Source of the DNA: Macrostomum lignano
Lineage: Eukaryota
Assembly (NCBI GenBank): GCA_002269645.1
Contig: NIVC01002718.1
Coordinates: 1-64,000, forward strand
Length of the DNA: 64,000 nucleotides
Direction: 5' to 3'
In this document: in pieces, positions 15,701-64,000 of the stretch
Position numbering within the stretch: position 1 is the stretch's first letter
How the letters are laid out: each line of letters begins with the position of its first letter
Position numbers and translations under genes: made by a program
The notes under the pieces: generated by a model
The model's database searches: none
The model's input: the letters and a program-made list of their open reading frames with translations, nothing else
Told to the model about the DNA's origin: nothing

Positions 15701-17212
15701 TATTCAACAATCGCTCCGACCGCGTCAAAGTGGTGTTCCATCCCGAGTTTCTGAACTCCAGCAATCCGCTGCTGCCCATGGACTACGAAGAGTTTGTGCG
15801 CGGCTGCCACCTGGGCGTGTTCCCGTCCTATTACGAGCCGTGGGGCTACACCCCGGCCGAGTGCACCGTGCTGGGCATTCCGTCTGTGTCCACCAACCTC
15901 AGCGGCTTCGGCTGCTTCATGGAGCAGCACATCGAGGATCCGGCCAGCTATGGCATCTACGTGGTTGACAGGCGCTACCGGTCCGGGGAGGAGTCTGTTA
16001 GTGCTGCATCATTTTTTTATGATGATGATTATCGTCAGTAGCTGGGTCTATCTATCCACGTGTCCACCTTCATGGTTATCTATGATATTCACCCCCATGA
16101 TAATCAGCCTCCATGATAATCACCACCATGATCATCACCCCCCATGATCATCACCCCCCATGATCATCACCCCCATGATAATCACCCCCCATGATCATCA
16201 CCCCCCATGATCATCACCCCATGATCATCACCCCCCATGATCATCACCCCCCATGATCATCACCCCATGATCATCACCCCCATGATCATCACCCCCATGA
16301 TCATCACCCCCATGATCATCACCCCCCATGATCATCACCCCCATGATCATCACCTCCATGATCATCACCCCATGATCATCACCCCCATGATCATCACCCC
16401 CCATGATCATCACCCCATAATCATCACCCCCATGATCATCACCCCCATGATCATCACCCCCATGATAATCACCCCCCATGATAATCACCACCATGATCAT
16501 CACCCCCATGATCATCACCCCCCATGATCATCACCCCATGATCATCACCCCCATGATCATCACCCCCATGATCATCACCCCCCATGATCATCACCCCATA
16601 ATCATCACCCCCATGATCATCACCCCCATGATAATCACCCCCATGATCATCACCCCCATGATCATCACCTCCATGAATCAAAATTCTCACTTTAATAAAT
16701 CATATTTCTGACTTCAATAAATCATATGACTCATGATAATCATATCTGCACACAATAATCCACCCCATCGCCGCTCCCATTCCGGTCCGCAGGTGCAGCA
16801 GCTCGCCCAGTTCATGTTCGACTTCACCCAGTTGAACCGGCGCCAGCGCATCATTTTGCGCAATCGGACCGAGCGGCTCAGCGAATTGCTCGACTGGAAA
16901 AATCTGGCCATCTATTATCGCAAAGCCAGACTGGCGGCCGTGTCCGCCACCCACCCGGCCCTGTTCAAGGACTCAGTCCGCGAGGTCGGCGGCGCCGGGG
17001 TCGGCACCGGCAAAGGCCCGTCGTCGATCATCCTGAGCCGGCCGCTGTCGGCCGTGGCCAGCCCGATGGGCAGCCGGGCCTCGACTCCGCATCACAGCAA
17101 TCCTGGCAGCGACGACGAGGGCGACACCGGCACCGGGGCTGGCGCGGTTAGCAGCGAAGACGAAGTCGACGAGGACGCCGAACGGGCCGAGCTGTCGTCC
17201 CGGTCCAACTGA
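796..17212 (+). CDS. GYS: Glycogen synthase, 6 exons: 796-961, 11399-11688, 12993-13484, 14165-14512, 15538-15996, 16793-17212 (2175 nt, 724 aa)
   Basis: Motifs [10 protein letters not shown]|[66 protein letters not shown] and [13 protein letters not shown] are all present. Every junction is GT-AG and the phases (1,0,0,0,0) keep one frame from ATG 796 to TGA 17210-17212. Confidence 0.95.
1120..1500 (-). pseudogene. Merlin/ISXO2-like (IS1595-related) transposase N-terminal fragment with premature stops
   Basis: Reads [10 protein letters not shown]...[27 protein letters not shown] and continues past a stop as DLVYHW...[19 protein letters not shown]. This matches the Zn-ribbon/HTH start of eukaryotic Merlin transposases as I recall it. 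No DDE core is present. Confidence 0.7.
1662..1938. mobile_element. 277-bp MITE with about 55-bp imperfect TIRs and a 10-bp TSD (Mutator-like)
   Basis: Left AATGGCTAAAGTTCCAGCACCAGAACC..TAATGGCTATAGAT is inverted at 1885-1936. TTTTAATTTT occurs at 1652-1661 and 1939-1948. Confidence 0.75.
1966..2467. mobile_element. 502-bp MITE with 16-bp TIRs and an 8-bp TSD (hAT- or Merlin-type)
   Basis: TIR CCACACTCTCGAATCT versus CCCCACTCCCGAATCT (2 mismatches). GGCTAGGC occurs at 1958-1965 and 2468-2475. A TACGCC motif is repeated internally. Confidence 0.75.
3175..3396. repeat. 24-bp minisatellite (GATAAGCCAAGGATTATTGCACTT), left part
   Basis: About 9 tandem copies. The same array resumes at 9237. Confidence 0.9.
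3495..3585 (+). pseudogene. 28S rRNA-derived fragment (H69-H71, R2/I-PpoI target region), copy 1
   Basis: GGTAAACGGCGGGAGTAACTATGACTCT...GTCATCTAATTAGTG..CAT.AAT.GA...AGATTCC matches the conserved LSU segment. The central TTAAGGTAGCC is degraded. Confidence 0.85.
5150..5640 (-). pseudogene. Gypsy integrase C-terminal (SH3-like/GPY) region with one frameshift
   Basis: [14 protein letters not shown]...LQVGDRVML...KHQPRF/-GPYRVI...VHVDRLKK...YNLRSR. There is a 1-nt frameshift near 5420. Confidence 0.8.
5842..6504 (-). CDS. Truncated envelope-like glycoprotein ORF (signal peptide plus Cys-spaced ectodomain, class III fusogen-like)
   Basis: N-terminal hydrophobic [14 protein letters not shown], then [26 protein letters not shown] and [13 protein letters not shown]. 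The spacing resembles rhabdovirus G as recalled. It lies inside the LTR element. Confidence 0.5.
   Translation of the reverse strand: MILMGLLIFAGSFCEIEAMHTQYVDSPKFCTDIRAPIAIRLPEQQDCKIPKEGQDGRIKLKLTLHHENAETHKSVMKICHREDYNFTAQLYKIAGKTVFVYLTVAIKLQTVTVEQCNSWNAGATTEDGTLEEDLKVDGCISRYSTKKWVRNDLDNLAKTGEKLEITVSTVLTNVPFYVSGNGMNSLYVPVDKCKYKESKCQRDEKAANFKIWPLECTLPE
7913..7926 (-). promoter_or_regulatory. Primer-binding site complementary to tRNA-Glu
   Basis: TGGTTCCCTGACCG starts 1 nt after the LTR end TGTTACA. It is complementary to the metazoan tRNA-Glu(CTC) 3' end ...CGGTCAGGGAACCA. Confidence 0.85.
9237..9730. repeat. 24-bp minisatellite, right part (degenerates towards about 9900)
   Basis: About 20 copies of the same unit, in the same orientation as 3175-3396. 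Confidence 0.9.
11327..11375 (+). pseudogene. 28S rRNA-derived fragment, copy 2, just upstream of the GYS exon 2 acceptor
   Basis: GTAAATGGCGGGAGTATCTATA...GTGCCTCGTCATCTAAATAG, with the central target site deleted. Confidence 0.7.
12071..12133 (+). pseudogene. 28S rRNA-derived fragment, copy 3, in GYS intron 2
   Basis: GGGTAAATGGCAGGAGTAACTATAACT...TTAAGGGTAAAAGCCTCGTCATCTAATTAG. Confidence 0.75.
12911..13016 (+). repeat. Two-copy tandem duplication (57 + 49 bp) spanning the GYS intron 2/exon 3 acceptor
   Basis: CCAGAACTCACGCGACC(C)nGCAG|GCGCACATCGGCATACCCTATCAC occurs twice, with AG at 12942-43 and 12991-92. Confidence 0.9.
13510..14130. repeat. 22-23-bp minisatellite (GACTTTATAAGAATCGCCCCTT), GYS intron 3
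   Basis: About 27 tandem copies. Confidence 0.95.
14590..15345. repeat. 25-26-bp C-rich minisatellite (CCAGTATCCGCCTGCACCCACTATCCTC), GYS intron 4
   Basis: About 29 tandem copies. Confidence 0.95.
16090..16675. repeat. 15-16-bp minisatellite (CATGATCATCACCCCC), GYS intron 5
   Basis: About 38 tandem copies. Confidence 0.95.
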
Positions 17213-20338: not shown

Positions 20339-31795
<11,457 letters not shown>

Positions 31796-33159
31796 CCTGC
31801 TCCAGCAGTTGCCAGATCAAAAGAATCTGGATAGCAACATATTTGAGCTAACTGGCTGCTCAATCCAGCGACTGTAACTCTGACTCTGACGGGAGGGAGA
31901 AAGCCATCTGTGCACTCAAAATTTAGCTGTAAAAATCGTCCAAAAGCCAAAACAGTGCGCATCGTTTCATCAAGTGTCATTTCCGTTTTTTTGCTGTCTT
32001 CGAATCATCAAATGCCTAAGCATATTCCAATTGAGATTGAGCACTGAGACATTTTTAACTGGCTTGATTTCCGCTCCTTTCGCTGCTTTAAACGCTTCAA
32101 AAAAGTCTCCAGAATCCCCGATGCAGTAGTAATTGCCTGACAGTCTGCCTGTACTGCTGTCTTTTGATCAGAACCACAGATACTAATAAAATAACTAGAT
32201 GGGCAACTCAGGCATGTATACTTAGTAAAACAGCTTTCTACTTCTGTTCAGTAGCAAAGAAGAATACATAAGCTATTTTATAAAAATCAAGGCAGCTGAA
32301 ATGACTTTGATAAGTTTAGAAGCCCAAACAAACTTGCAGGCGTAAACAACTTGCTAATTGGTTCAGCAATAATGTACATTAGCCAGTCCACTCAAATGTA
32401 CATGTCAGCTTTAGGCTGGAATTCCGAGAGAGGGAGGCAATAAAAATTGGGGCGGGGCGGGGGGTAGTGTGGAGAGGCGCGGTTGGAGGGTTTAAGCTGG
32501 AGGGTAATAAAATGAATGGGGTAATAAAACAGCCAATGAATGAGCCTTGGCTTTAAAAATACAGTAAAATGCTTCTGTTTAACTTACTATTGAACTGAAA
32601 GTAGCTTACACGCAAATGTGCTGAGTGGCCTATCTGGCTGTTCTAGTATCTGTGATCAGAACAAAAAATCCATAAATAAATAAATAAACTAAATAATTCT
32701 GGTCGTGCTGTGAGGCCTTTGCATAGCGCTGTGGGCCTGAAAAGAAAGTCTTTGACTTAGTTTTAATATCCTGGGTCTGGATCGCTTGAAAGCAACAAAG
32801 CAATTTTAATGTGTGCCTATTTATTTGCGAATATAATTGCACTTGTTTGACAGAATTACTTGAAATTCTTGTTAAATATAAAATTTTAATATTTCTACTG
32901 CAAGTAGTGAGTGAGATGAGTAGAAATAAACAATTTAAGTGCCTGTAGGATAACTGGATAAGTCTGTTGTCAATTCAAGCAAAGATTTGGCATGCAAAAG
33001 CGACTGGTGGATCTTTATGGTCTGTTATTAAAATATAATTTAATTAGAGAATTGTAGTAAGATTCTACCTTAAAATAAAGACACTTGGCTGAGATCATAT
33101 CTCCCATTCCAATCTCATAGGTGAGGTGTAACATCGTATATTTGATATAGGAGCCTTAT

Positions 33160-33863: not shown

Positions 33864-36800
33864 TCAGTTGAACAGCAGGTTTCTGTAGCAGCTGAGCAGC
33901 TCCGTAATGCTCGTGGCGTAGCGGCTAAACGTCCGCACCACCCTATAGCGGTGCGCCCGTTCGAAGTTCGAATTGGCCATTTCATAGTACTCGCAGTCGG
34001 CCAGAGTCAGCGACTTAAGCAGCGGGCATTTGCTTCTGGAATTTAGAGAGAGAGAGACCTTGGCCTTGAAGTGAGAAAGCGTCGGTGGGGGAATCCCGCC
34101 TTCTTTGACTTTGAACGGGTCGGTGAGGGAATCCCACCTTCTTTGACCTTGAACGGGTCAGTGAGGGAATCCTGCCTTCTCTGACCTTGAAGTTAGGGGT
34201 TGGTGGGGGAATCCCGCCTTCTTTGACCTTGAACGGGTCGGTGGGGAAATCCCGCCTTCTTTGACCTTGAACGGAACAGTAGAGAATCTCTCCATGACCT
34301 TAAACGGGTCGGTGGAGGAATATCGCCTTCTTTGACCTTGAACGGGTCGGTGTGGAATCCCTTTTTATGACCTTGAATGGGTCGTTGGGATACCCACCCT
34401 GACTTTTAGGATGATGACTCACCGAATATCGTCGATAAACTTTCCGCTCTTATGGCTGAATCTAATCGTTGTCACGTCCCATTGGATCTCGAGCCTCTCG
34501 AGCTTCTGGCAGTTGCTAGCAAAGGCGTTAATGACCTGGTCAATGTGCACCTTCGTGTTGAGCTCAAAGTACCAGCCGTCGCGCTGGCCTAAAGTGCAGA
34601 TTCTGCGGGTAGAGGCAGATGCTGAAAATTTTGCGACTTAATTGTATTGAACGATACCATTACGGACTTCAAGAGCGATCTTAAGGGCTGAGAGGCGATT
34701 CTCAGGGGCGAAGAGGCGATTCTCAGGGGCGGAGAGGCGATTCTCAGGTGCGGAGAGTTAGGAGTCTCACTGCAGGTTTCTCAGCAGCGGTATGTTGGCC
34801 GTCCAGAAGAACTCATTGAGCAGCGGCTTGCCGTGCAGCATGAGGCCGCTGAGCTGCGGGCCGCACCTGCGGAGGAATCTCCCGATGGCTGCCTCGCTCA
34901 GGCTGGCCGTGTAGCTGATGTCTATGGCCCGGAGCTCGCGGAAACTGCCCTTCTGCATCAGCCGGTCCAGAATCTGATTGTTGCCAAGAGGAGAATGGTT
35001 GGGGTTATTGGTCAGTCATGATGTATGAATCATGAGCAATTCATGAGCGATTTACGAGCGATTCAGGAGTGATTCAGGAGTGATTCATGAGTGATGCATG
35101 AGTGATGGATGAGTGATGGATGAGTGATGGATGAGTGATGGATGAGTGATGGATGAGTGATGGATGAGTGATGGATGAGTGATTCATGACTGATTCATGA
35201 GTGATTCATGAGTGATTCACGGGTGATTCATGAGTGATTCATGAGTGATTCATGACTGATTCATGAGTGATTCACGGGTGATTCATGAGTGATTCAAGAG
35301 TGATTCACGGGTGATTCATGAGTGATTCATGAGTGATTCATGATTGATTCATGAGTGATTCATGAGTGATTCATGAGTGATTCATGATTAGAATTTCTAA
35401 TCGTTAGGCATGTACACTTCACTGTGCCTTAGGGGTTGGCCCTCAATTGCGTTAATTTCTCGAGCAGAGCCAAGCCGGGATTCCAATTTAGCCCCAAAAT
35501 AAATGTGACTGCACTTGGATCGAGCCTGGGCCGCAGGCACATAAGCTGCTACTACTTCGATATTGGCTGAAGTTGGAGTCATGATACCCATAGCCGGTAG
35601 AACAGCTGACCGGGTCAGTGAAGAAGTCGCAATAGCCGACTGCGAGGTACTGGAAGCTGACAATTCTTCCCAGCACATTGTCCAGGCAAGCCGATGATAG
35701 CTCCGTTGAGGTGATGTCCAGCTCAGTGACGTGGGTGGCGGCCCATTCAACCGCCATCATGTGCTCGTCTTTCAGGTCTGGCAAAGAGCAATTGGCAAGT
35801 TTGCACTGGTTTAGTGAGTAGCCTCGATATTGCTTTTAAACTGGTTGTATATGCCTTTTAATGCCTTTTATGTGGGCGATTCTCAATGCTAGTTTAGGGC
35901 GATTCTCACCGCTAGTTTAGGGCGATTCTCACCGCTAGTTTAGGGCGATTCTCACCGCTAGTTTAGGGCGATTCTCACCGCTAGTTTAGGGCGATTCTCA
36001 CCGCTAGTTTAGGGCGATTCTCACCGCTAGTTTAGGGCGATTCTCACTGCTAGTTTAGGGCGATTCTCACCGCTAGTTTAGGGCGATTCTCACTGCTAGT
36101 TTAGGGCAATTCTCAATGCTAGTTTAGGGCGATTCTTGCCGCTAGTTTAGGGCGATTCTCACTGCTAGTTTAGGGCGATTCTCACCGCTAGTTTAGGGCG
36201 ATTCTCACTGCTAGTTTAGGGCGATTCTCACTGCTAGTTTAGGGCAATTCTCAATGCTAGTTTAGGGCGATTCTTGCCGCTAGTTTAGGGCGATTCTCAC
36301 TGCTAGTTTAGGGCGATTCTCACTGCTAGTTTAGGGCGATTCTGATTTATGGATGTTTGCTCGTTTCTAGTTGAAGGGTAATTTAGATAAAGGGGTTCCT
36401 ACTTGTTTCTACCTGTGGTTCAGTAGGGGGGGGGCTATTTCCAACAGTGGATCAGTGGGGATTCCCAACAGTGGATCAGGGGGATTCCCAACAGTGGATC
36501 AGGGGGGATTCCCAACAGTGGATCAGAGGGGGGGGCGATTCCCAACAGTGGATCAGGGGGGGGAGGCGATTCCCAACAGTGGATCAGGGGGGGGGCGATT
36601 CCCAACAGTGGATCAGGGGGGGGCGATTCCCAACAGTGGATCAGGGGGGGGGAGGCGATTCCCAACAGTGGATCAGGGGGGGGGCGATTCCCAACAGTGG
36701 ATCAGGGGGGGGCGATTCCCAACAATGGATCAGGGGGGAGGCGATTCCCAACAGTGGATCAGGGGGGGGGCGATTCCCAACAGTGGATCAGAGGGGGGGG

Positions 36801-38827
36801 CGATTCCCAACAGTGGATCAGAGGGGGGGGCGATTCCCAACAGTGGATCAGAGGGGGGGGGGGCGATTCCCAACAATGGATCAAAGGGATTTTCTTGTTT
36901 CAGCAACTACACTGAGGCGATTTGCAAAATGCCAGCCCCAAGTCTCACCGCAATGATGCAGCAGCAGAGTTTTAATCTTCTTGCACTTTTCCAGCAGCAC
37001 TTTGAGCGAAGCGCCGGTCACTTTGATGCAAAAGTTGAGCGCGACGCACTCCAGATGGACGCAGTTGTAGGACAGCAGCTCCACGTGGGTGTCGTCTACG
37101 AACATCACGCCGTAGAGGTTCACCACCCGGAGGTTGGGTGTGTGGGACTTGATCTTGCTCAGATTGATCACCTCGTAGATCTCTTCCTCCTCTTCTGTGC
37201 TCTGCTCGAATGTGCCTGGGTGATGTTTTGTACGGTAGGGGAGTTGATACAACATGACAAACTGACCAATTGATAGATTGATACAGCATGACAAACTGAC
37301 CAATTGATAGATTGATACATCATGACAAACTGACCAATTGATTGATTGATACAGCATGACAAACTGACCAATTGATTGATTGATACAGCATGACAAACTG
37401 ACCAATTGATAGATTGATACAGCATGACAAACTGACCAATTGATAGATTGATACAGCATGACAAACTGACCAATTGATAGATTGATACAGCATGACAAAC
37501 TGACCAATTGATTGATTGATACAACATGACAAACTGACCAATTGATAGATTGATACAGCATGACAAACTGACCAATTGATAGATTGATACAACATGACAA
37601 ACTGATCAATTGATTGATTGATACAGCATGACAAACTGACCAATTGATAGATTGATACATCATGACAAACTGATCAATTGATTGATTGATACAGCATGAC
37701 AAACTGATCAATTGATTGATTGATACAGCATGACAAACTGATCAATTGATTGATTGATACAGCATGACAAACTGACCAATTGATTGATTGATACAGCATG
37801 ACAAACTGACCAATTGATAGATTGATACATCATGACAAACTGAATAATTGATTGATTGATACAGCATGACAAACTGAATAATTGATTGATTGATACAGCA
37901 TGACAAACTGACCAATTGATAGATTGATACAACATGACAAACTGATCAATTGATTGATTGATACAGCATGACAAACTGACCAATTGATTGATTGATACAG
38001 CATGACAAACTGACCAATTGATAGATTGATACAGCATGACAAACTGAATAATTGATTGATTGATACAGCATGACAAACTGACCAATTGATTGATTGATAC
38101 AGCATGACAAACTGAATAATTGATTGATTGATACAGCATGACAAACTGATCAATTGATTGATTGAAACAGCATGACAAACTGACCAATTGATTGATTGAT
38201 ACAGCATGACAAACTGACCAATTGATAGATTGATACAGCATGACAAACTGACCAATTGATAGATTGATACAGCATGACAGACTGACAAGTTGATAGACTG
38301 AATGCTCAGCCTCACCAATCAGATGCAGCACCTGCACACTGGACAGGCAGTGGTAAATCTTGCGCATGAGGCCCTCCATGAAAATTACGTCGCTAAGACA
38401 GACGCACAGATTCTCCAAATTCGCGGGGAAATCCACCAGATCAGTGTAATCGTGCAGCTGCATCGCTTTGCTGAAGTCCAGCGTCATGCAGCGCAGGTTG
38501 ACGCACTGCCTGGCCAGCTCCTCCAGCACCGGGACAATGATCAGCTCGCACGGCAGCTCGATGCTGCGCAGTCCGGTTGAGAAGCGGCAGCCGATCAGCT
38601 CGATGAACTGGTTCACGTTGCTCACGGATAAGCCGCCGTACTCAGGCCGTAGGCGGACATTCTTCCACAGCCGGGTGTCGTAGGCGAGCTCGCGCCAACG
38701 GCTGCACACCTGGCAGATCAGGCACAGGTCCTTGTGCGATAGGTAGCTGAACACGCGGAGGGCCAGCTTGCTGGGCAGGTCGTTGAAATTGAAGTTGCTC
38801 TGCGGGAACGACGCGGGCGAGAGGCGG
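33864..38827 (-). CDS. F-box/leucine-rich-repeat protein; exons 38827-38316, 37215-36949, 35777-35611, 34973-34771, 34602-34423, 34035-33864; 5' exons unresolved
   Basis: F-box FNDLPSKLALRVFSYLSHKDLCLICQVCSRWRELAYDTRLWK is followed by FBXL-type LRRs (PNLRVVNLYG, LECVALNFC, VTELDITST, LRAIDISYT, LERLEIQW). GT-AG phases 1,1,0,2,2 join into one frame ending ...YRNLLFN* at TGA 33864-33866. Confidence 0.9.
34085..34395. repeat. About 38-bp minisatellite (GGGAATCCCGCCTTCTTTGACCTTGAACGGGTCGGTG)
   Basis: About 8 copies in the last F-box intron. Confidence 0.9.
34695..34755. repeat. 21-bp repeat (GGCGATTCTCAGGGGCGGAGA) x3-4
   Basis: Lies inside a 168-bp intron. Confidence 0.85.
35020..35390. repeat. 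11-bp minisatellite (GAGTGATTCAT / GAGTGATGGAT)
   Basis: About 33 copies. Confidence 0.9.
35872..36345. repeat. 23-bp minisatellite (GGGCGATTCTCACCGCTAGTTTA)
   Basis: About 20 copies. Confidence 0.95.
36425..36890. repeat. About 29-bp minisatellite (GGGCGATTCCCAACAGTGGATCAGGGGG)
   Basis: About 16 copies with variable G-runs. Confidence 0.95.
37245..38300. repeat. 32-bp minisatellite (GATTGATACAGCATGACAAACTGACCAATTGAT)
   Basis: About 33 copies filling an F-box intron. Confidence 0.95.
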
Positions 38828-39434
38828 CTGTTCAGGGGTCGCATTGGGGTGGAACGGGAGTGTGAGAATGGTAGCTTGTACGAGTAGAACGGTAACTACG
38901 CTCGTAGCTGGCCAAAAAGCGTCATAGAGTCACGAGAGTCATTTCAGAATAGTTGCAGGTAACGCAAATAAGATAGGAAAGAAGCGACTCTACCGGTAGA
39001 CGATTCTAAAACGAGGAGTTGTCACGGTACAAGTCGTCAAAAAGTCGTTTAAGAGTCGCCCGGTTTGAGACGTTTGATTGACTGCGGCTCTTACCCAACT
39101 CCCAACTCTTGGGCGGTTCTATAACGACTTTGGGGGCCGTAAAGTCGAATCTCAGGCGTGCTATAGGGTCGCTGCAGCATCACCAAGCATCTGCGTCATT
39201 TTATGAATTAGAAGCGCATTTTGGATTTATCATATAACAACTCCATTTAGTCTACTTGAGTTAGTAGAAAACGACTATTGCAGAACGAGTTTTTCACGAT
39301 TCTACAACTCACGTGACGCGCTCGTGACTCAACAGTCGTCTCTCCATCGCATCACAGTCGTTAAAAAGTCATAAGAGTCGTCCCAGAATCACTTGTGAAT
39401 TCTTTTCAATGACTAGCGATTCTTGTCATGGTAA

Positions 39435-41284: not shown

Positions 41285-42955
41285 TTAGTTGGGTAGCGCC
41301 AGGCGCCAGACTAGCGCCATATTTCGCGCCGACTTGTCCACCAGCCAGCGGCCCCACTTGTGCTCCTGGCCGAGGCCGGCCGCCAGCCTCAGTTCGCCGC
41401 CTCCATCATCATCAGGCTCCTCATCTGCTGAGGCTGGCCAGAAAGCCAGCTGATTGACAAAGCCGGCAGCCGGCAGTTCGAGCAGCCGGCTCAGCGTCAT
41501 GCCAGAGGACCCGGGCTGGGCGGCCACGCGCCAAAGGCGCACCAATCCGTCCCAGGAGCCGCTGGCCAGCAGATCCGCATTCTTCACGGCGGCCAGAGCC
41601 GTCACCCAGCGGTCCGGGCCGTGCGCCGCCGCCACCTTGGCCACTGGCCGCTTCTTCTGCATCGACCACAGGCACAGGCTGCCGTCGCCTTGACCGCTGG
41701 CGAATACCTGCTCCGTAACCATGGCAACGCATTCGCAGCTATTCGGCCCGCCGCCGGGCGGCAATTCGAACACTAGCTGAGACTCTTCGGCCAGTTTCCA
41801 TAGTCGCAGAGACTTGTCCGGGCCGCCGCAGCTGATGCAGCGGTCCAGGCGCATGGCGTCCAGTCCCAGTACGGGGGCGCTGTGACCGAACAGGGCCTCA
41901 ATGAAGCCCAGGCCGCAGTCTGGCGCTCCGCCCAGGCCCCAGTGCCGCACCGTCTTGTCGTGCGAGCCGCTGAACAGATGCAGCCCGCCGCCGCTGCCGG
42001 ATCCAGGCGCCCGCCTACGAAATGCCAATGCGTTGACGGCCGCCCGGTGACCGCGGAACTGGTGCACCAGCTGCAGGCTGTCGGCCTGCCACACCAGCAC
42101 GAGGCCGTCGGCATCGCCGGTGGCCAACCGGGTCTGATCGGAGCTCAGCGCCATGCACAGCACGTGGCCGCGGTGCAGAACGGCGCCGTCCGCCTCCGCC
42201 AGCTGCTGCTCAGTCTTGGCCTTCGGCTTGGACTTTAAGGAATGCCGGCAACGCTGCCGGAGGCCGCCCGGCACGTGGGCTACTCGGCGAAGATGCCGAC
42301 GCTCGCTGTCGCCGTCTTTGATCAGCACAGCTTGCAGAGACCAGCGCGCCACGGAGCCGTCCTTGCTGGCGGTGTACAGAGAATTGTCGCCGAGCTGCAC
42401 GCAGGTGACAGCCAGGCGGTGCCAGTTCTTTGCCAGACTGACGCTGCCGCTAGCGGCGTCGGCGGCAACGGCGGCTCCCTCGGCGACGATGGCATCGGCG
42501 AAGCTGGCGCGCAGGCGGCCGGCCCGTCGGAGATTCGCCGACTGCAGCCGGGCGCTGACCGCGCCGGTCACGTGAGCCTCCTCGTCTTCGTCATCATCAT
42601 CTTCATCCTCGTCGCCATAGCCAAGTCGTTCGGCTTCGCGTGCTTTTAACTCGCCGATGAGCTGCTGGGCCAGGCGCACCCGGGCCTCCTGCGGCGTCTC
42701 CAGCGCGTTGTCGTCGTCGTTCATAGCGGCGCTGTCCAAGTCGGCGGCGGCGGCGGCGACATTGACGGGTTCGTCAATTTCCGATTCGCTGGTGATTTCC
42801 TCTTCAGCTTTGACCTTTTCGGGTCGCTTCTTCTGCTTTTTCGACGCCTGTTGAGACTTGCCGTTGATGCCGGGCGCAGCGGCTGCCGCAGCGTAACGCA
42901 AGCGTTTCGCAACGGAGATCTTTGCCGGCTTTGTCCGTTTGGTTGGATTCGGCAT
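41285..42955 (-). CDS. RRP9: U3 snoRNP-associated WD40 protein RRP9/U3-55K, intronless, 556 aa
   Basis: Basic/acidic N-terminus, ETPQEARVRLAQQLI, WD repeats GHRAAVNALAFR, EALFGH...LD, LWKLAEESQLVF and DLLASGSWDG, and the C-terminal GLGQEHKWGRW signature. Confidence 0.92.
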   Translation of the reverse strand: MPNPTKRTKPAKISVAKRLRYAAAAAAPGINGKSQQASKKQKKRPEKVKAEEEITSESEIDEPVNVAAAAADLDSAAMNDDDNALETPQEARVRLAQQLIGELKAREAERLGYGDEDEDDDDEDEEAHVTGAVSARLQSANLRRAGRLRASFADAIVAEGAAVAADAASGSVSLAKNWHRLAVTCVQLGDNSLYTASKDGSVARWSLQAVLIKDGDSERRHLRRVAHVPGGLRQRCRHSLKSKPKAKTEQQLAEADGAVLHRGHVLCMALSSDQTRLATGDADGLVLVWQADSLQLVHQFRGHRAAVNALAFRRRAPGSGSGGGLHLFSGSHDKTVRHWGLGGAPDCGLGFIEALFGHSAPVLGLDAMRLDRCISCGGPDKSLRLWKLAEESQLVFELPPGGGPNSCECVAMVTEQVFASGQGDGSLCLWSMQKKRPVAKVAAAHGPDRWVTALAAVKNADLLASGSWDGLVRLWRVAAQPGSSGMTLSRLLELPAAGFVNQLAFWPASADEEPDDDGGGELRLAAGLGQEHKWGRWLVDKSARNMALVWRLALPN

Positions 42956-54570: not shown

Positions 54571-55339
54571 GAGAACCATCTTTGACCATGTAGAGAGATC
54601 TCTTTTACCCTGTTGTGAATCCACTTTTACCATACCATGTACAGAATCCCCTTGAATAATTCATGAAGATAGTCCTTCTTTTACCCAGTCTATAGTATCT
54701 CTATACCCTGGACAATCTCCCTTATCCATTCGAGTCAAGAATCTTTTTTTGTATGCATTAGAGACTTTCATCACGCAACTATAACATCGCTATTGCATAG
54801 AAAGTTAGAAAAAAGTTATAGCATATATTTTCGCTCCTCCTACTGAACAGTAGTGATAGTGGGCTGCTACAAATTTTACGAGCAAACAAACATTTTCGTG
54901 TTGAAAATAAACATGTAAACTTTGAAAAAATATAGCTGAACATACAGTACTCTTGTGAAATGCAATGTGTGTGCATGTGCGAGCTTATGGATCTGAATGC
55001 AGTACATGCACATCACATAAGCCGCAACATAATGCAGGTTGTTGCTTGTAAGCTTGTGTAACTTTAATAGCACGCAGCAAATAGTTCTTTGACAAAAACT
55101 ATGGACTTTACTAATCACAATAATTCCGATGAACTTAATCCTAAAAGAACCAATTTGATCAATGGGAGCATCTCCGCTTGCATGTACTTTTACTTGCATA
55201 CTGTACCGGTACATGTAGACAACAACAACAAAATACGTTGTCAGCCGGTCAAGCGAGAGTCAGTCATGAGAGGAAAGGGCAGAGTCACAGAGCACGTTTC
55301 AGGGCCTAGGCGTAAACGTTAGGCCGCACCACCGGCAGT

Positions 55340-57790
55340 GTCCGGGGCGTCGGCATCAGCCAGCAGGCAGTCGACGAAATGCCCAGTGCACGCTCCTGTC
55401 CCCGCTTACCTGCACCGTCTGCGGACAGTAAGACGACTCGGCGCGGATGATACCGCCTGCCAGCTGGAATCGCCGACGGCGCAACAGTTCGCTGGGAATT
55501 GGGATAGGCTGGTGCGGCGATAGAGTGCCGCATTGGTGAGGTGCTCGCTGGGACTGCAGGACAGCCCTCACAGAACGGAAAGCAGCCCAGGCAAGTCTGC
55601 GGCGACTTCACAGATCCTCGGGAACGTCAGGGCACCAGACCGCCGAGGAAATTAAAACGAACTGCTGACAGTAAGTGTGGAAGCTTCCTCACCTTCGGGA
55701 AACCATCAGCGTCTCAGCAGAAAATCGCAGCCTCGATGTCTATAGCTGGCGCGCGCAAAGCACGACGGTCTTCTGAGTGTTGAACCACCAGGCCGACGAT
55801 CGCCGCAAAGCTTACCCTGCCTGTCTAGCTGGCGCTGGGCGCCCTCGACGGTCGAGGACAGCAGGGCGAGATCATCAGCGTAGCCACGCACGCTATAAGC
55901 CGCCTCTCTGGTTGGCGTCAACCCACGCGTCTCTGCAGCAGGAATAGGTCGTCGTCATCAGAGGGAAGAGTGGTCCACAGCTCTTCAAGGCCGTCCGGTG
56001 TCAACAGAACCCATGCAGTCAAGCACCAGGAAGAACAGGAGCGGCCCAAGCGCAGCTCCTTGAAGCACCTCAGAGGATGTCTCAAAGACATCCGACAGGC
56101 CGTCCGGTGTCAACATGCAGCAGCGCTCCGTGTCATGATATTGCGCCATGACGGCGGAAATCAGCTGCTCTGGTACGTTGTACGCACAAATCACCATTGG
56201 GAGCACGGCCCTCACAACCGAGTCAAAAGCCTTTCCCGAAGTCAATAAAGAGAGCAATAGGGTTCGACTGCGCTTAATTCCTCGATGATTTGGCGAAGAG
56301 CCAGGATCTGCGCCACTGTGCCGCGATGGTGCCGGAACCCGTTCTGCTCAGGCCGCAAATACGGATCCAGCTGCAACCGCGATACCAGCATCCGATTAAA
56401 CAGCTTCGGAGCGCAGGACTGCAGGCGGATGCCTTGGTGCTCTTCAAGCCGTGTGGTGTCCGGCGTCTTCAGAATAGCGACGATTTTCGCCGTGGTCCAC
56501 TTTTTGGGTGTTGCCTCACCGAAAAGCACTAGGTTCATCACACTGGCGACCTCGCTGGCCACACAGTGGAGTCGCAGCACCTTGATGTTTACCTCGTCCG
56601 GACCCAGCGCTTTTGCCGCCCGGAGTCTTTAGGGCGAGCATCACAACGTCGGATGTGTTGGCTGGGGCTACGCTCGTACATTGAAGCTCTTCTCTGCTGG
56701 CAAAAGCAGCTTCAGATCGCTTGGCAGCGCGGAGGCGGCGGCGAGTTGACAATGGCGGCGAAGGACTCGCGCAGCACATTTCTGTGCTCATCCGGAGTGT
56801 CGCCAGCCAGATTGAGCGGGATGTGCCAGAGCCTCCTCCGCCTCGCGAGTTGGCCGAGTGCTCAGACGGAGCAGCTCTCCAGCTCTGCCCTCGATTTCTG
56901 AATCGCAGGGTTCTCCTGTCTGGCCGGCTGCCTACGTTCGGCCGGTCGCATCAGCGGAACTGCTTGCTTCGTCGCGGCTCTAACCGCGGAACAATTACCT
57001 CCGTGCAGTCGGCGCGCCCGCACCTGTCGCCAAGCGCGCTGACAAAGGCGCTAGCAAAATAACTACGCGTCTGGGTGTCCTTGAGTGCATGCACGGTAGT
57101 AGCGCCGCGGTTGCCACTTCGGCGGACGGTAGAGCAGATCACATACACACAGAATGAAGACGTGGAGCCGATGGTCGGACCAGAGAGCTAGCATGCGTGA
57201 TGGTGCGGCTGTCGACGGCGCGGCGGGGCTCGCGAAGACGCACAAGCACGTAATTGAGCTGTGCCTGCCTCCGCATCGCATTTCATTGCCCCCGCTTGCA
57301 GCCCACGAGGGTCGCGAGCCTGCCGGGTGGCTTGCAGAAGTGGGTGTTGGCCGACACTATGTCCTGCCTCTCCAGGAAGTCCCCCAGCGCTCCGGTGATG
57401 TCGTTCTCGCCCGGTGTCACCAACAGCGACCTCTCAGACCTACGCAAAACTGCGTTCAGGTCTGAATGGACGATCATTGTGTTCACGCTGCGCCGTCTCC
57501 TTCCCCTGCGCTGCGCCGCGCCCAGGTCCTCACAATGAATTCCCGGGTCGGCCCTGATGGACACCTCAATTGCAGTGCGATAACGTTCGCAGCTTAAGTC
57601 AAGCGCTACCATATGTAGCTGCGCCAGCAGCCCTCTCCACCAAAGCGGCCTTGAGAGTGCGGCAGTTCAGCGTCCCGAACTGAAGTGTGCCCTGTGGTAC
57701 GGTTCAGCCTCATGTTCCCTGGCGCCATCCAGAATATCCGCATGGGCCAGCAGCAACTCGGCGGGCAGCACCTTGCCGACCTCGTCAGTG
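55340..57790 (-). mobile_element. Degenerate APE-RT non-LTR retrotransposon (RTE-like) with many frameshifts
   Basis: LQFGTLNCRTL (APE start), SDLNA, NTHFCKP..RL.T, SDHRL, WTTAKIVAI.K, EQNGFR..RGT..QILALRQIIEE, KAFDSV, VLQG..L.PLLF.LVLD and YADDLALLS, in the canonical order. Confidence 0.9.
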
Positions 57791-58019
57791 CAAATAGAAG
57801 TTTACAACATACTTACTTATAGAGTAAGTCTGGAACATAGACTATTGTCATGTAAAGGTAACGTGAAGGAGTCCTCAAGTATGCTCTTAAAGCCAAACAT
57901 TATAACCTCTCTCTCACACTAGTGAAGGAACAGAAAAAGGAAAAAATCCCCAAGATCCCCTAGGAACTTTGGCTTAAAGTAAGCCACTCTGGGGCGAGTC
58001 TAATGACTCTTTCGGGACC

Positions 58020-58790
58020 GTATAACCCGTATAAAACGAAACGGTCACAAAAAGGGGCTGTTACCGTGTTTTTTACCGTTACGGTCACCAGTTACCATTT
58101 TTTACCGTATTTGTGACTGTTTAGTTCAGGGTCACCAGGTGACTGTTCAATGTTACCGTACTTTGTGACCGTTTTGTTTAGGGTAACCCTGTGACTGTTC
58201 ATAGTTACCGTATTTTGTGACCGTTTTGTTTAGGGTCACATGTTACCGATCAATGTTACCGTATTTTGTGACCGTTTTGTTTAGGGTAACCATGTGACCG
58301 TTCAATGTGACCGTATTTTGTGACCGTTTGTTCAGGGTCACATGTTACCGATCAATGTAACCGTATTTTGTGACCGTTTTGTTTAGGGTAACCATGTGAC
58401 CGTTCAATGTGACCGTATTTTGTGACCGTTTTGTTTAGGGTCACATGTTACCGATCAATGTGACCGTATTTTGTGACCGTTTTGTTTAGGGTAACCATGT
58501 GACCGTTCAATGTGACCGTATTTTGTGACCGTTTGTTCAGGGTCACATGTTACCGATCAATGTGACCGTATTTTGTGACCGTTTGTTTAGGGTCACATGT
58601 TACCGATCAATGTGACCGTATTTTGTGACCGTTTTGTTTAGGGTCACATGTTACCGATCAATGTGACCGTATTTTGTGACAGTTTTGTTTAGGGTCACAT
58701 GTTACCGATCAATGTGACCGTATTTTGTGACCGTTTTGTTTAGGGTAACCATGTTACCGATCAATGTTACCGTATTTTGTGACCGTTTTG
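58020..58790. repeat. About 51-bp tandem array built of GT(G/T)ACCG subrepeats, with two alternating variants
   Basis: GTGACCGTTTTGTTTAGGGT(CACATGTTACCGAT|AACCATGTGACCGTT)CAATGTGACCGTATTTT, about 13 units. Confidence 0.9.
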
Positions 58791-59169
58791 TTCTGTTGTG
58801 GAGTTTACTACTTGTCGCTTTCTACCAACTGTTGTCGTCTTCACTGCATAATAGGCTGCTACTATGTTGCTTAATTTGAGTGCGGCGTGACGCACGTGTT
58901 ATTGTTGCCTGAATTTTTACTTTACAATTTTACAGAGTAGCCTCTCCTGAAATAGGTCACATGGATACCCAGTTATATATAGTTAGGTATGGACAAGTGA
59001 TAGTTATGAATAGGGAAGCAAATTTATTACCTATGCCCAGGGATACGTTCTCTTTCAAATCAGTATATAAGGAGAAGTGACGGTAACCCACGAAGCAACT
59101 GACTAATTTCTCATGAACGTTTGCCACTTTTGCAGAGGATAAGAATCATTAAGAACAAAAATCTCTATC

Positions 59170-60319
59170 ATGGAAGACCAGCAACGCCGCGCCATTATGA
59201 ATCGTTTAAGAGTGAAACGATTTCGAGAACGCAAGACAGTGCAGCTTCTATTTCAAAGGCGACAACAGTGGTTGCAATCTGGAACGACTGCAATGGGCGC
59301 CGCCATTGGAAATCCACAGACGAATCGTGGTAATAAGCGCCGTCATCCAGACGACGACATCGGTAGCGAAGGTACTCCACAACCGCCATCTACCGGCGAA
59401 GCTACTTCACAACCGCCATCTACCGGCGAAGCTACTTCACAACCGCCATCTACCGGCGAAGCCTCCACCAGCGAAACTGCCAGTGAAGCCGGCGATGCCA
59501 GCGAAGCTACCGAAAGCTCTGCCAGCGAAACTGCCAGTGAAGCCGGCGATGCCAGCGAAGCTACCGAAAGCTCTGCCAGCGAAACTGCCAGTGAAGCCGG
59601 CGATGCCAGCGAAGCTACCGAAAGCTCTGCCAGCGAAACTGCCAGTGAAGCCGGCGATGCCAGCAAAGCTACCGAAAGCTCTGCCAGCGAAACTGCCAGT
59701 GAAGCCGGCGATGCCAGCGAAGCTACCGAAAGCTCTGCCAGCCAAGCACCTAGCGACGATGCCGAATACAGCGATGACGGTGACGGCGATGATTATGATT
59801 CAGACGACGCTAAACTGCGTAACTTTTGCCAGTTGGCCGCCTATCCTGGCGCTACTGTCCGGCGCAGCAAATAGTGCGGCATCGGTTTGTCCATCGTGTG
59901 CACCACTGTGCGCCAATGGCTTTAACTGGCCAGCAGCCTGGATCGACATGGCGTCAGACAAAGCTGCAGAAAAAGCTGTGGTGGTCGACATGCTGCAGCG
60001 AGTGGCCAAGCAGCTACCGGCACGGGCCGAGGAGCCCAGCAAGATACACCGCTGCCGCATTGTCATCACGACAATGATTGCGTACCTGGCGCAACAAAGA
60101 TCAAAAGGCGCCAGCCATGGTGACACGCCCGCTGAGGCGCAAAAGGCAATGGCCAACTGCCTGCGCATGATGTGCGATCGATATGGCCAAACTGTACTGG
60201 AGTCCGGCGAGGCGGTGCAACGGTCCGCCAACGGGCCGCCGGTCGCCGTAGTGTACGGCAAAGCGGCGTGGTTTCGCGAGATGTCTCGGGCGGAGGCCAG
60301 CTTTTGGAAGGCCGCCTAG
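59170..60319 (+). CDS. Unknown protein: basic N-terminus, Ser/Ala/Glu repeat region and helical C-terminal domain; probably 59170-59818 + 59868-60319 (366 aa)
   Basis: ORF 59170-59874 (RRAIMNRLRVKRFRERK; 30-bp x3 and 54-bp x5 repeats) joins the +1 frame (CPSC...WFREMSRAEASFWKAA*) through a 49-nt GTAACT..GCAG candidate intron. Confidence 0.5.
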
Positions 60320-61409
60320 ACCGCCCGCGTCGTGCCGGAGCCCGAGCCGCTGTCCGCTCGCCGTTATAGGCCGCGTGGTGGTCGCTCTACCCGCCTGCGG
60401 CGATTGTTCACCGCCATGGCTGCACTACTGCATAGCCGACCGGTCTGCGCCTTCGGCATGGCGGACGCCACTTTGGCAATTTTACTGCAGTATTGGGACA
60501 TGTCCAGTTAGACCTATATAGGTGAAATTTCAAAGAGCATCCGAGGTGTGGCCAAAAGTTAACGAGAATGTAGAATTGAACGTCTCGAATATTAAACTTA
60601 AAAAACAAAATAATTGCCTAGAATAGTAGCATCATCTCTATAATACACTTCATGAAACAGCCATTGGCTTTTTAATTAAATAATACATCGTAAATAGTAA
60701 TAATAAATAAAATTAAATAAATGAATAAAATAATATTAGTAAATAGTAAATAGTACTTAAATAGTTCCAACTGTTCAATAACACATTCACGTTACACTTT
60801 TGGCCACGTCTCGTAGTTTAACGGCCAGCCAACACAGCTGCATTTATTTTGCCAGCGCCATTTATTTTGGCGATGACGCATTAATGCGCAGATATTTTTC
60901 TACCGCTGCCGCTTGACAGTCTACGCCTGTTAAGTCGTCAGCGTATGTTATTTATATATATGGCCATATATGGCAATGACGCATTAATGCGCAAATATTT
61001 TTCTTCCACAGCTTTTATTGTTCTTTCACACTATGTTCTTCCAATTATTAACCTAAGTAGTACTAATACTACCGTGTATGTACTGTGTGTTGCAATTAAT
61101 ATTCATAATTCTACTACTACTACTAATAATAATACATATAGCCCGGTGGCCGCAAGGTTGCTGCAAGTTATGCGGCGCCTATTTTGGTCAATTCTTTACT
61201 ATTACTCTGGTCACAGCTGCAGTGTGTGTGTGTGTTGCCTCCTTTGGAGTAACTAATATAAGCGTACAGGAAATATGCAGACTCTTCCCTATAGCCCGTT
61301 TGCGTACGCAGCTGTTGCTTTCATTCTGATCTGAAGCTTCAAAATTTTAAACTTTTTGCATCTTAACGCCTTGCAGCTCCGTACCTGTCCGAGTTTCTTC
61401 CCATCGTCG

Positions 61410-62204
61410 ATGTCGGATCACTGGTCTCACGCCGCAACATGCGAAATCTGCAAAGCGCTGGTTCACGAGAACTGGGCCTTGAGAGCGGAGGTGGAGCGCC
61501 TGCGTAGCGGACGACCGGGTTCGCCTGTGTTCGATACCAGCCGCAACGTGCGCTTCCATCGGGCTATCGTGCGTTCAGATGTAGTGCCCAGCACTCAAGT
61601 GACAAAGTCCGCATGGCCGTTCAAGGACACTCGCTACAGCGATATTGCCGCCAACCAGGCGCGTGACTGTGCGCAAGTCTGCGAATCGGAGACTATGGGC
61701 CCCGAGAGTCTGCATCACTGGTACGCCGACAACCAGGCGAGTCGGCGTCAGCTGAATCAGCCGGCCGCGCAGCTGGACAGTGAGGATGAGCAGCAGTCGC
61801 GTGACGGGCCTTTGGCAATGTCCACTGAAGCCATTCAAACCGGACCGGCTCAAATGGTGTTGTCGGACAGTTTCATAGCAGACTATAACCGACTGCCTGA
61901 GGCGAGGATTCCGCAAAACTGCGTTTTTAAGGCTCGAAAGCGGGATGAGCGCATGCAGCTCGAAGCGCACTGCTGCGTTCAATGCGAGGGTTGGTTTGCC
62001 AACCTATCGCCGGAGACGAAGAGGAAACGCCTGCAGGCGGCTGGCCGTCATCGGTCCAACCAACCGAGGCCAAACTACGACCCCAATTTTTTCCGCATAG
62101 AAATGCCGGACACACCCCCAGAGGCACCAATCGATGCGATGAAAGTTGGTAAGCGTCGTCGCAAACCTCTACAACTAAGAGGTCCGGAACCTCGCAATAA
62201 TTAG
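61410..62204 (+). CDS. RBBP8: Miniature CtIP/Sae2/Ctp1 (SAE2-domain) homologue, about 264 aa, single exon visible
   Basis: C-terminal RKRDERMQLEAHCCVQCEGWF...KRLQAAGRHRSNQPRPNYDPNFFRIEMPDTP matches the CtIP RKxxER..L..CxxC...RHR..P..P.NF(W)...P.T block as recalled. N-terminal CxxC plus coiled coil. Acceptor at 61376-77 and AATAAA near 62208. Confidence 0.75.
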   Translation: MSDHWSHAATCEICKALVHENWALRAEVERLRSGRPGSPVFDTSRNVRFHRAIVRSDVVPSTQVTKSAWPFKDTRYSDIAANQARDCAQVCESETMGPESLHHWYADNQASRRQLNQPAAQLDSEDEQQSRDGPLAMSTEAIQTGPAQMVLSDSFIADYNRLPEARIPQNCVFKARKRDERMQLEAHCCVQCEGWFANLSPETKRKRLQAAGRHRSNQPRPNYDPNFFRIEMPDTPPEAPIDAMKVGKRRRKPLQLRGPEPRNN

Positions 62205-62620
62205 ACAAATAAAGTGATGAAGGACTGCGCTACATCACTAAATTTCTAACCGTACTTAAAAACCGCACGTCTGCTATGTGTTTTGGTATAAAACTTTTTC
62301 TCGCTCACGACTGCGCTACATCACTAAATTATTACTAACGGTATTTTAAACCGTCCGACATACGTCTGTCAAGCCGTTGTTCCATTCATTTCAAATGTAC
62401 CATTGATCACCTTTAATCTTAGTACCTTGTGTAAAACACGGACTAACACTAAACTATAGTTAAACTAAACTAAACTAGCTAGTACTAGTACCTGCACGCT
62501 AAACACGGACTAACACTAAACTAGCAGCTGCACGTTTTTTCTACTATATCTGTACTTTGTAACACTCAGATTAAACTACATCCTCATTTGCAGCACTGCA
62601 GTATTACAATAGAAACCAAA

Positions 62621-64000
62621 ATGCCCAAACCAAGTGACGCTACTACAAAGCCAAAAGAGAAAGGCAGCAAAACGGGCGCCAAAGGGTCGCGAAAGAGGCC
62701 CATCGAGACGGAGCCAAACAATGAAAAAGCGGTAAAAAAGCGCAACAGTAAGTCCAACTTAGCCTCCGCCGCTGCTAGCGCTACTTCCGCCACTGGCGCA
62801 TCCACTAATGCTGATGGCGCTTCTATCCCCGCTGGTGCTTCTACCGCCGCTGGTGCTACTGCCGCCGCTGCAGCTGGCGCATGCGCTAACACTGATGGTG
62901 CTTCTACTCCCGCTGGTGCTTCTACCGCCGCTGGCGCGACTGCCGCCGCTGCAGCTGGCGCATGCGCTAACACTGATGGTGCTTCTACTCCCGCTGGTGC
63001 TTCTACCGCCGCTGGCGCTTCTAGCACCTCTGCGACTGGCGCCGGTAAAAAGCCAGCTTCCGGTGGCCCAGCAGCATACCGCTACTGGGTATTTGAATAT
63101 GCGCCGGAAGACGGCGGTCGGCTTGGAGTCTATGCCGACAAGTGTGTTGTTACTGACGGCTCAGTAGATTCGAGCAAACTGTCAGTTGACGATGATGTCA
63201 CCATTAGACCGGGAAAGACCGCCAATAGTAAGGCGTACCGCGTGCGAATATGCAAAGGGCCATACCGCACAAAGGCGGCTGCAGAAGCCGGTGCCAGTGC
63301 CTGTCAAGCGGTACACAGGCCGGGTGGCATTAACATGCCTAACGGTTGCGCCACCTGCCAGGCGCTCAGGCATGAGGTTTTAAACCTCCGGACATCCGCC
63401 GAATTGGCGCAGCAGACTGCCGACGGCTACAGGGAAAGCCTGCAACGGCAGAATGAAGACCTGGCCAAAAGACTCGAAGACGCTGAATTTGAGCGCAATG
63501 AGTACAAAGAGAAGTATGAAAGTGCAGCCAATAGAACACGCGAGTTGGAGTGCCAACTCGAGTACGCACAGATCGGTGCTAATCCTTCAAGTTCTGCTGA
63601 ACAATCGGTCGGTGTTCTCGCCAAATATGCTACGGTGTTGCAGGACGCCGTGTTTTCCGCCATCGGCGTTCTGCAAGGTGCGGTTTCGCAGGATATCGTA
63701 GTAGATTGCGTTGCTGACACGATCAGCAGCAGCAGTACGACTGCTGGTGGTGGCGCTTCTGCGGCCGCCTCGTCTGCAGCTCCGTTGCTGGACGACATGG
63801 ACCTGCGCGCTCAGATCCGAATGTCGTCAGTGAATCAGCGGAAACGTGAGCCCGAGACGAGGTCCTTGACAGCGCGCTGTCCCGACGTCGTCGTGTCGGC
63901 CACCGACTACGCAAAGATAAAGAATGCCGTGTCCGCCTATGTCAAGGGAGGTTACAGGAGTACCGACGCAGATAAATTGCTTCGGACCTTGTACTTAGCA
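62621..64000 (+). CDS. Unknown protein of more than 460 aa, open to the window edge (missing from the ORF track): basic NLS-like start, Ala/Thr repeats, CxxC-coiled coil, possible BEN-like domain beginning at the edge
   Basis: I translated ATG 62621 to 64000 by hand with no stop. It contains a 78-bp internal duplication, CATCQALRHEVLNLR plus a long heptad coil, and ends ..DYAKIKNAVSAYVKGGYRSTDADKLLRTLYLA. Confidence 0.8.
   Translation, partial: MPKPSDATTKPKEKGSKTGAKGSRKRPIETEPNNEKAVKKRNSKSNLASAAASATSATGASTNADGASIPAGASTAAGATAAAAAGACANTDGASTPAGASTAAGATAAAAAGACANTDGASTPAGASTAAGASSTSATGAGKKPASGGPAAYRYWVFEYAPEDGGRLGVYADKCVVTDGSVDSSKLSVDDDVTIRPGKTANSKAYRVRICKGPYRTKAAAEAGASACQAVHRPGGINMPNGCATCQALRHEVLNLRTSAELAQQTADGYRESLQRQNEDLAKRLEDAEFERNEYKEKYESAANRTRELECQLEYAQIGANPSSSAEQSVGVLAKYATVLQDAVFSAIGVLQGAVSQDIVVDCVADTISSSSTTAGGGASAAASSAAPLLDDMDLRAQIRMSSVNQRKREPETRSLTARCPDVVVSATDYAKIKNAVSAYVKGGYRSTDADKLLRTLYLA

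Follow-up and report, generated by a model that had tools for sequence, protein, structure and literature searches.

A compact CtIP/Sae2/Ctp1-family reading frame in Macrostomum lignano, probably a lineage-specific paralogue with no S/T-P at the cyclin-dependent kinase position

CtIP is usually a single-copy gene. A 64,000-nucleotide (nt) stretch of the Macrostomum lignano genome (contig NIVC01002718.1, positions 1–64,000; here called the window) contains an open reading frame (ORF) of 264 amino acids (aa) that resembles the CtIP/Sae2/Ctp1 family at its C terminus, raising the question of whether it is a working gene of the animal and how it relates to any other CtIP in the same genome. An earlier interpretation made from the letters alone (the sequence-only reading) had described a miniature, intronless CtIP/Sae2 homologue with altered regulatory sites, possibly a captured copy. 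We conclude, with moderate confidence, that the ORF is a genuine host gene encoding a compact, probably single-exon, lineage-specific CtIP/Sae2/Ctp1 paralogue. No relevant literature on CtIP or RBBP8 in Macrostomum turned up.

Results

The C-terminal domain belongs to the CtIP/Sae2/Ctp1 family

The family assignment is carried by a Sae2-like domain at the C terminus of the ORF (61866–62189, +; aa 153–260), delimited by phmmer and by a custom profile. Against 1.84 billion representative sequences, phmmer returned 42 matches at E ≤ 1e-3, all of them located at the C terminus of the target. Pfam SAE2 is present in nine of the ten best matches, and three of those nine contain CtIP_N as well; E values to vertebrate CtIPs with both domains were ~1e-5 to 1e-7. 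The custom profile comprised 25 homologue domains, both Macrostomum sequences excluded, and was run on 1,141 six-frame pieces of the window. Its sole match was the ORF (77.6 bits, E 5e-23), covering profile positions 7–113 of 119. A tblastn search of the 64-kb window with 43 homologues detected neither a second copy nor a CtIP-like exon upstream.

The Pfam model itself was less responsive. PF08573 (SAE2) scored 18.1 bits (E 0.0057) with only the last third of the model matched, just short of the 19.8-bit gathering cut-off, which is an operational criterion and not a biological one. The second M. lignano family gene described below, Mlig004387, scores lower still, at 13.4 bits. The sub-threshold score is attributable to divergence in this lineage, which has lost the S/T-P and the Trp that the family normally carries. 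A word-indexed homologue search with the ORF returned nothing and one with the domain alignment just 13 distant SAE2 proteins, none from a flatworm; the ORF had no match in a PDB sequence search or in NCBIfam. The place of the ORF in the domain family is nonetheless secure on sequence comparison despite the low Pfam score, phmmer and the independent profile being in agreement.

The motifs that had first suggested this assignment are both located in the ORF. The CxxC pair Cys189/Cys192, within CCVQC (61971–61985, +; aa 188–192), is invariant in the family alignment and is followed at family spacing by Arg213-His214-Arg215 (RHR; 62046–62054, +), of which the His and an Arg are invariant. A basic KRRRK patch followed by P-L (62151–62165, +) is also found in Mlig004387, in the metagenomic protein P0002 and in many animal CtIPs. 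Vertebrate CtIP (RBBP8) has the Sae2-like domain, CxxC, RHR and the 12-residue regulatory spacing in common with the ORF. It is, however, ~3.4 times longer, contains a CtIP_N tetramerisation domain with no match in the ORF, and has T-P at position 847, T-Q at 859 and Trp at a nearly invariant aromatic position, where the ORF has Y-D, T-P and Phe, respectively.

The protein is short, as the word 'miniature' implied, but it is not exceptional. Family length reportedly spans <200 to >900 aa (bioRxiv 10.1101/2023.08.05.552090). The RBBP8 proteins of Trichinella spiralis, T. patagoniensis and T. britovi (229–299 aa) and a Trichuris suis Ctp1-domain protein (210 aa) are comparable to the ORF in size or smaller. 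Like the ORF, these short nematode proteins have T-P at the T859-equivalent position; unlike it, they keep S/T-P at the cyclin-dependent kinase (CDK) position and an F-W pair. P0002 (315 aa; JGI metagenome contig Ga0450804_1774655) is likewise a short uninterrupted ORF with a linker and a Sae2-like domain.

M. lignano has a second, longer CtIP gene

The best match of the ORF is the M. lignano gene pair Mlig004387g2 (PAA54340.1, 395 aa) and Mlig004387g1 (PAA88737.1, 481 aa, partial), both annotated as hypothetical proteins. Mlig004387g1 lies on NIVC01000176.1 and Mlig004387g2 on NIVC01002929.1, each flanked by acetyl-CoA synthetase and EMP24 genes. Mlig004387 has at least three coding exons spread over ~3.3 kb and encodes an N-terminal coiled coil of ~70 aa and a long low-complexity linker. 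Hence, the separate, long, intron-containing host CtIP that the sequence-only reading had proposed to look for exists, on other contigs, and the ORF is not a single-copy CtIP. Identity between the two proteins is ~55% and is confined to the C-terminal 108 aa, the remainder being unalignable.

Within the domain, the two M. lignano genes have a set of features in common. In each, N-Q comes after RHR, NFF replaces xFW, the T859 position reads T-P, S/T-P is missing from the T847 position, and P-L follows a basic K-R-R patch. They differ in locus and neighbours and in the residues at the CDK position, Q-A in Mlig004387 and Y-D in the ORF. In a neighbour-joining tree of the domain the two are sisters with 98.5% bootstrap support. 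P0002 is the next relative (71.5% support). It has the N-Q, T-P and K-R-R-R-R-P-L features in common with the ORF, and differs in having T-P at the CDK position, the F-W pair, a longer coiled coil and a Pfam SAE2 score that passes the cut-off (37.6 bits). As a side observation, the 1.6-kb contig encoding P0002 has 20-nt-class tandem repeats at its ends (1–60 and 1440–1603) and AT-rich flanks, a layout that recalls Macrostomum contigs.

Codon comparison bears on the age of the duplication. Over 103 codons, dN/dS (the ratio of non-synonymous to synonymous divergence) between the ORF and Mlig004387 ranges from 0.18 (NG86) to 0.35 (LWL85), with dS >1.2 and saturated; mismatches fall at frequencies of 0.33, 0.29 and 0.58 at the three codon positions. 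Saturated dS together with low dN/dS therefore points to an old paralogue whose domain has been under purifying selection. The duplication is, by this estimate, far older than the recent genome duplication in M. lignano. Averaged over 24 other homologues, identity is 27.9% for the short copy and 27.3% for the long copy, by which measure the short copy is no more degenerate than the long one. Two divergent CtIP genes are thus seen in the M. lignano sequence, a long one with introns and the short one in the window.

Loss of the CDK site is common to both paralogues

In human CtIP, T847 is a CDK site and T859 an ATM/ATR site (PMC10706839; bioRxiv 10.1101/2023.08.05.552090), in agreement with the assignments made in the sequence-only reading. 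An ungapped alignment from RHR places Tyr223 of the ORF at the vertebrate T847 position and Thr235 at T859, with the same 12-residue spacing as in vertebrates. The surrounding residues are NYDPNFF (aa 222–228) and PDTP (aa 233–236). Y223-D224 (62076–62081, +) therefore occupies the position of human T847-P848 and yeast S267, and T235-P236 (62112–62117, +) that of human T859-Q860. That the first of these is not T-P and the second is T-P had both been noticed before, and both hold.

What these changes mean was judged from 63 family sequences scored at both positions by their offset from the aromatic pair. The change at T859 is ordinary on this comparison: T-Q is found in 28 of the 63 and T-P in 24, among them sequences from nematodes, mites and molluscs, P0002 and both Macrostomum genes. 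The conserved Thr 12 residues past the CDK position is itself kept in the ORF, as Thr235. The CDK position is another matter. S/T-P is present in 57 of the 63 sequences, and the six exceptions are the ORF (Y-D), the two Mlig004387 sequences (Q-A) and a ladybird cluster of three (T-I). Loss of the site is therefore unusual, and being common to both paralogues it most likely predates their duplication.

This alters the interpretation of the short copy. The earlier suggestion that it had 'escaped normal cell-cycle gating' does not stand in that form, because the long paralogue also lacks the site; the loss reads instead as a lineage-wide trait. The CDK site of CtIP is described as stringently conserved and, in mouse, as essential for development (PMC10706839). 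A counterpart exists in Schizosaccharomyces pombe Ctp1, which according to published description is short like the ORF and has a non-phosphorylatable residue, I283, at the CDK position, where it faces Leu77 of Rad50 instead of an Arg; a C-terminal peptide of Ctp1, 15 residues long, is able to stimulate Mre11 in the absence of CDK phosphorylation (bioRxiv 10.1101/2023.08.05.552090). Unlike the ORF, Ctp1 is a fungal single-copy gene. The chemistry of Y223-D224 may provide an apolar, an acidic or a phosphorylatable contact, all three being compatible with the sequence. Other candidate proline-directed sites in the ORF are S38-P, S200-P and T235-P.

A short predicted helix and a putatively disordered linker precede the domain

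AlphaFold2 was run on a 14-sequence alignment and returned a model of low overall confidence (mean predicted local distance difference test score (pLDDT) 55). Two parts of it are better defined. One is an N-terminal helix of ~22 residues (61443–61508, +; aa 12–33; pLDDT 73–79) with leucine-zipper-like spacing, Leu17, Leu24 and Leu31 forming heptads with Asn21 and Val28 between them. This helix is a candidate dimerisation element. The other is a set of short helices at aa 178–211 (pLDDT ~80), within the Sae2-like domain, followed by an extended tail that bears both regulatory positions. The intervening linker (61509–61865, +; aa 34–152) is predicted with low confidence, as for a disordered segment, and has no detectable homologue.

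The N terminus resembles those of its relatives in few respects. It had been described as a CxxC-containing coiled coil, of which the CxxC is present, as CEIC (61440–61451, +; aa 11–14), and the coiled coil amounts to the one predicted helix. No significant coiled-coil or CtIP_N match was obtained in the ORF, the N-terminal fragment giving a single faint HALZ match (E 0.16). The CEIC motif is absent from Mlig004387 and P0002, and because these two closest relatives have no CxxC there, homology to the CxxC of the vertebrate CtIP coiled coil is unsupported by the alignment. The N terminus as a whole could not be aligned to the N termini of the long paralogue and relatives, with no significant match. 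The end of the helix has a weak E-N-x-x-L-(K/R) resemblance to the coiled-coil ends of P0002 and a further relative, P0043, and a Gly/Pro-rich stretch closes the helix as it closes the coiled coils of these two proteins.

The reading frame has a gene-like layout

The coding sequence runs from ATG at 61410 to TAG at 62202–62204 (61410–62204, +; 264 aa plus stop), the coordinates, start and stop being as first described. The stop-to-stop frame around it extends from 61335 to 62201, or 289 codons, a length reached in just 2 of 2,000 mononucleotide shuffles of 60001–64000. GC content is 0.53–0.65 in the ORF, 0.32–0.45 in the 600 nt upstream and 0.34–0.41 in the 400 nt downstream. The putative polyadenylation hexamer AATAAA (62208–62213, +) starts 4 nt past the stop. 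Upstream, TTGCAG (61371–61376, +) fits the motif (T/C)TNCAG, which is the most enriched at M. lignano spliced-leader (SL) acceptors (PMC8629364). The ORF is a sharp GC island with a gene-like layout, bearing AATAAA on one side and an in-frame SL-acceptor motif on the other.

The open leader contains no (T/C)TNCAG other than TTGCAG, and an exon with its first base at 61377 would share the reading frame of the ATG. The transcript may receive a spliced leader at 61376/61377. Trans-splicing of the SL affects about 30% of M. lignano genes, and the 35-nt SL ends in ATG (PMC8629364). The 33-nt in-frame leader (61377–61409, +) would then be either 5' untranslated region or, if an SL-donated AUG is used, an 11-codon extension. 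Related arrangements occur in both relatives. The first coding exon of Mlig004387 (9992–10423 of locus L001, NIVC01000176.1) has no ATG and directly follows an in-frame TTCCAG, an arrangement that fits donation of its start codon by the SL and would account for the 'partial' label of the deposited model. P0002 has an in-frame TTTCAG 12 nt ahead of its ATG. For the ORF, a single-exon and possibly SL-trans-spliced gene is the simplest reading of the sequence.

The same acceptor-like hexamer could have a different use. If an upstream exon or exons were cis-spliced to 61376/61377, the ORF would be the last exon of a longer gene in which an N-terminal coiled coil is restored. The position of TTGCAG in frame, 33 nt ahead of the ATG, would suit this, as would the contrast between the ~22 helical residues of the ORF and the 50–70-aa coiled coils of P0043 and P0002. 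However, the tblastn search described above detected no other CtIP-like sequence in the 64 kb, the preceding 1 kb is AT-rich with stops in every frame, and TTGCAG fits the SL trans-splice acceptor consensus equally well (PMC8629364). Moreover, the coiled coil of the long paralogue and of P0002 shares an exon with the sequence that follows it. We therefore regard the last-exon interpretation as unlikely. The earlier term 'intronless' stands to the extent that the ORF is an apparent single exon and short, its basis being an unbroken frame and base composition.

Two other genes in the window, RRP9 and Sec61beta, lack introns too; for the U3-55K/RRP9 gene (41285–42955, −), the protein collection contains an entry of 100% identity, which maps to NIVC01002718.1 with coordinates that agree with those in the window. 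Because the outgroup P0002 is an uninterrupted ORF too, intronlessness is possibly ancestral, and a short intronless gene may have been the original form in the clade, with the long paralogue the elaborated one. No long terminal repeats, terminal inverted repeats or dispersed repeats surround the ORF (57500–64000), no further copy of its flanks occurs in the window or in 88 kb of sequence from other M. lignano loci, and neither a poly(A) tract nor flanking direct repeats are present at the ORF. Since dS is saturated, marks of retroposition would have decayed in any case.

Discussion

The reading we favour is of a genuine host gene. Its product, as modelled, has a short zipper-like helix at the N terminus and a complete Sae2-like domain at the C terminus, joined by a disordered linker. 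Homology suggests that the Sae2-like domain would engage Rad50/Mre11 and promote the endonucleolytic clip made by MRN (Mre11–Rad50–Nbs1) at blocked DNA ends. The contact at the CDK position is probably not CDK-switched at that residue in Macrostomum, by analogy with S. pombe Ctp1, and proline-directed control would need other sites, namely T235-P, S38-P or S200-P.

Several findings weigh against this reading. The ORF is unannotated in the NCBI record, in which the region 43092–63382 is annotated with Sec61beta alone. Among 15 billion predicted proteins, in collections that include assemblies of public sequencing runs, it was matched nowhere beyond the domain, and exact-protein look-ups of the 264-aa form and of a 282-aa form (the TTG-start ORF from 61356) returned no record. 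The Pfam SAE2 gathering score is missed (18.1 against 19.8 bits). The N-terminal 150 aa have no homologue, and the evidence of constraint covers the C-terminal domain. The N-terminal helix falls far short of the coiled coils of relatives in length, and tetramerisation of the short protein is doubtful, in a family where tetramerisation is important for CtIP and the tetrameric architecture is tied to DNA bridging (PMC6344080). The first of these points counts for little because annotation of the contig is sparse, a clear F-box gene at 37708–38844 also being omitted; absence of the ORF from it is weak evidence.

The missing annotation and the want of a matching predicted protein in large collections would also suit a duplicate that is silent or decaying: an old copy, long under constraint, that has since lost expression. 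Against this, the frame of 289 codons is intact although dS is saturated. Every invariant residue of the domain is kept, and conservation of the domain is on a par with that of the annotated paralogue; the contig's annotation misses other clear genes too. This alternative is as improbable, in our estimate, as that of a last exon.

A broader version of the host-gene reading is that Macrostomum has rewired the licence for resection: the CDK switch was lost, the gene was duplicated, and the minimal Tyr-Asp paralogue is maybe constitutive or differently controlled, perhaps in neoblasts or the germline. We consider this quite unlikely as it stands. If true, it would link the short paralogue to regenerative, DNA-damage-tolerant biology.

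Alternatively, the short protein might bind Rad50/Mre11 without a tetramerisation module, compete for MRN and so tune or restrict resection. Its truncated N-terminal helix and complete C-terminal domain are what such a modulator would have, a full-length paralogue is present in the same genome, and the CtIP tetramer has been tied to DNA bridging, as noted above. The proposal is, however, purely inferential. C-terminal fragments of the family can stimulate Mre11 (bioRxiv 10.1101/2023.08.05.552090), such that lack of a tetramer does not equate to inhibition, and a short CtIP is the sole copy in other animals, for example Trichinella. We think a modulator role distinctly improbable.

Capture by a mobile or virus-like element, or recent retrocopying, is very improbable: an apparently intronless ORF whose paralogue has introns, and a decayed non-LTR (long terminal repeat) reverse-transcriptase remnant ~4 kb upstream on the opposite strand would favour it, but the remnant has no visible connection to the ORF, no bracketing repeats or poly(A) tract were found, divergence from the paralogue is ancient (dS >1.2), and RRP9, Sec61beta and the nearest outgroup gene, P0002, are uninterrupted as well, which leaves the 'captured copy' of the sequence-only reading unsupported.

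One animal with two divergent CtIP paralogues, neither with the CDK site, offers a natural comparison to S. pombe Ctp1 and Rad50. It also yields a checkable prediction, that Rad50 should show co-variation. Finally, the deposited annotation of an organism used as a model for regeneration and stem cells lacks this gene.

Other features of the window and of the compared loci

The reverse-transcriptase remnant lies at ~55300–57600 (−) of the window and is of non-LTR type. Its RVT_1 matches are weak and cover successive parts of the model; it also has a YADD-containing piece, and is split over several ORF pieces, with one or more frameshifts and one or more in-frame stops. Between it and the CtIP-like ORF, at 59170–60319 (+), tandem repeats of 30 nt and 54 nt are traversed by two long ORFs that overlap in different frames. 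Their N terminus is basic and their C-terminal part non-repetitive, and they have no significant Pfam match and no annotation in the NCBI record; they may represent a gene, either with an exon rich in repeats or with a change of frame within the repeats.

Long tandem-repeat arrays are found at 14503–15500, 23689–24618, 25706–26778, 27622–29401, 31164–31820 and 36371–38300. On both strands these arrays account for the majority of the longest 'ORFs' in the window, and they provide no evidence of genes. One array adjoins a glycogen-synthase exon (~15520–16041; Pfam E 2e-88) and another lies inside the F-box gene region. The ORF of that gene (37708–38844, −), absent from the NCBI record, encodes an F-box-like domain with a strong match (58 bits), beyond which the sequence derives from repeats.

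Two further elements are common to the window and the Mlig004387 loci (L001 and L002). A non-coding repeat of ~420 nt with no Rfam match occurs at 32173–32654 of the window, 8525–8886 of L001 and 7903–8309 of L002, the window copy being 80–89% identical to those at the two Mlig004387 loci, where the repeat sits immediately downstream of the acetyl-CoA synthetase gene. An isolated fragment of eukaryotic large-subunit ribosomal RNA (Rfam RF02543, 52.9 bits, model positions 2130–2335) is found at 3439–3584 (+) of the window, and 60-nt stretches related to it are present in L001 and L002.

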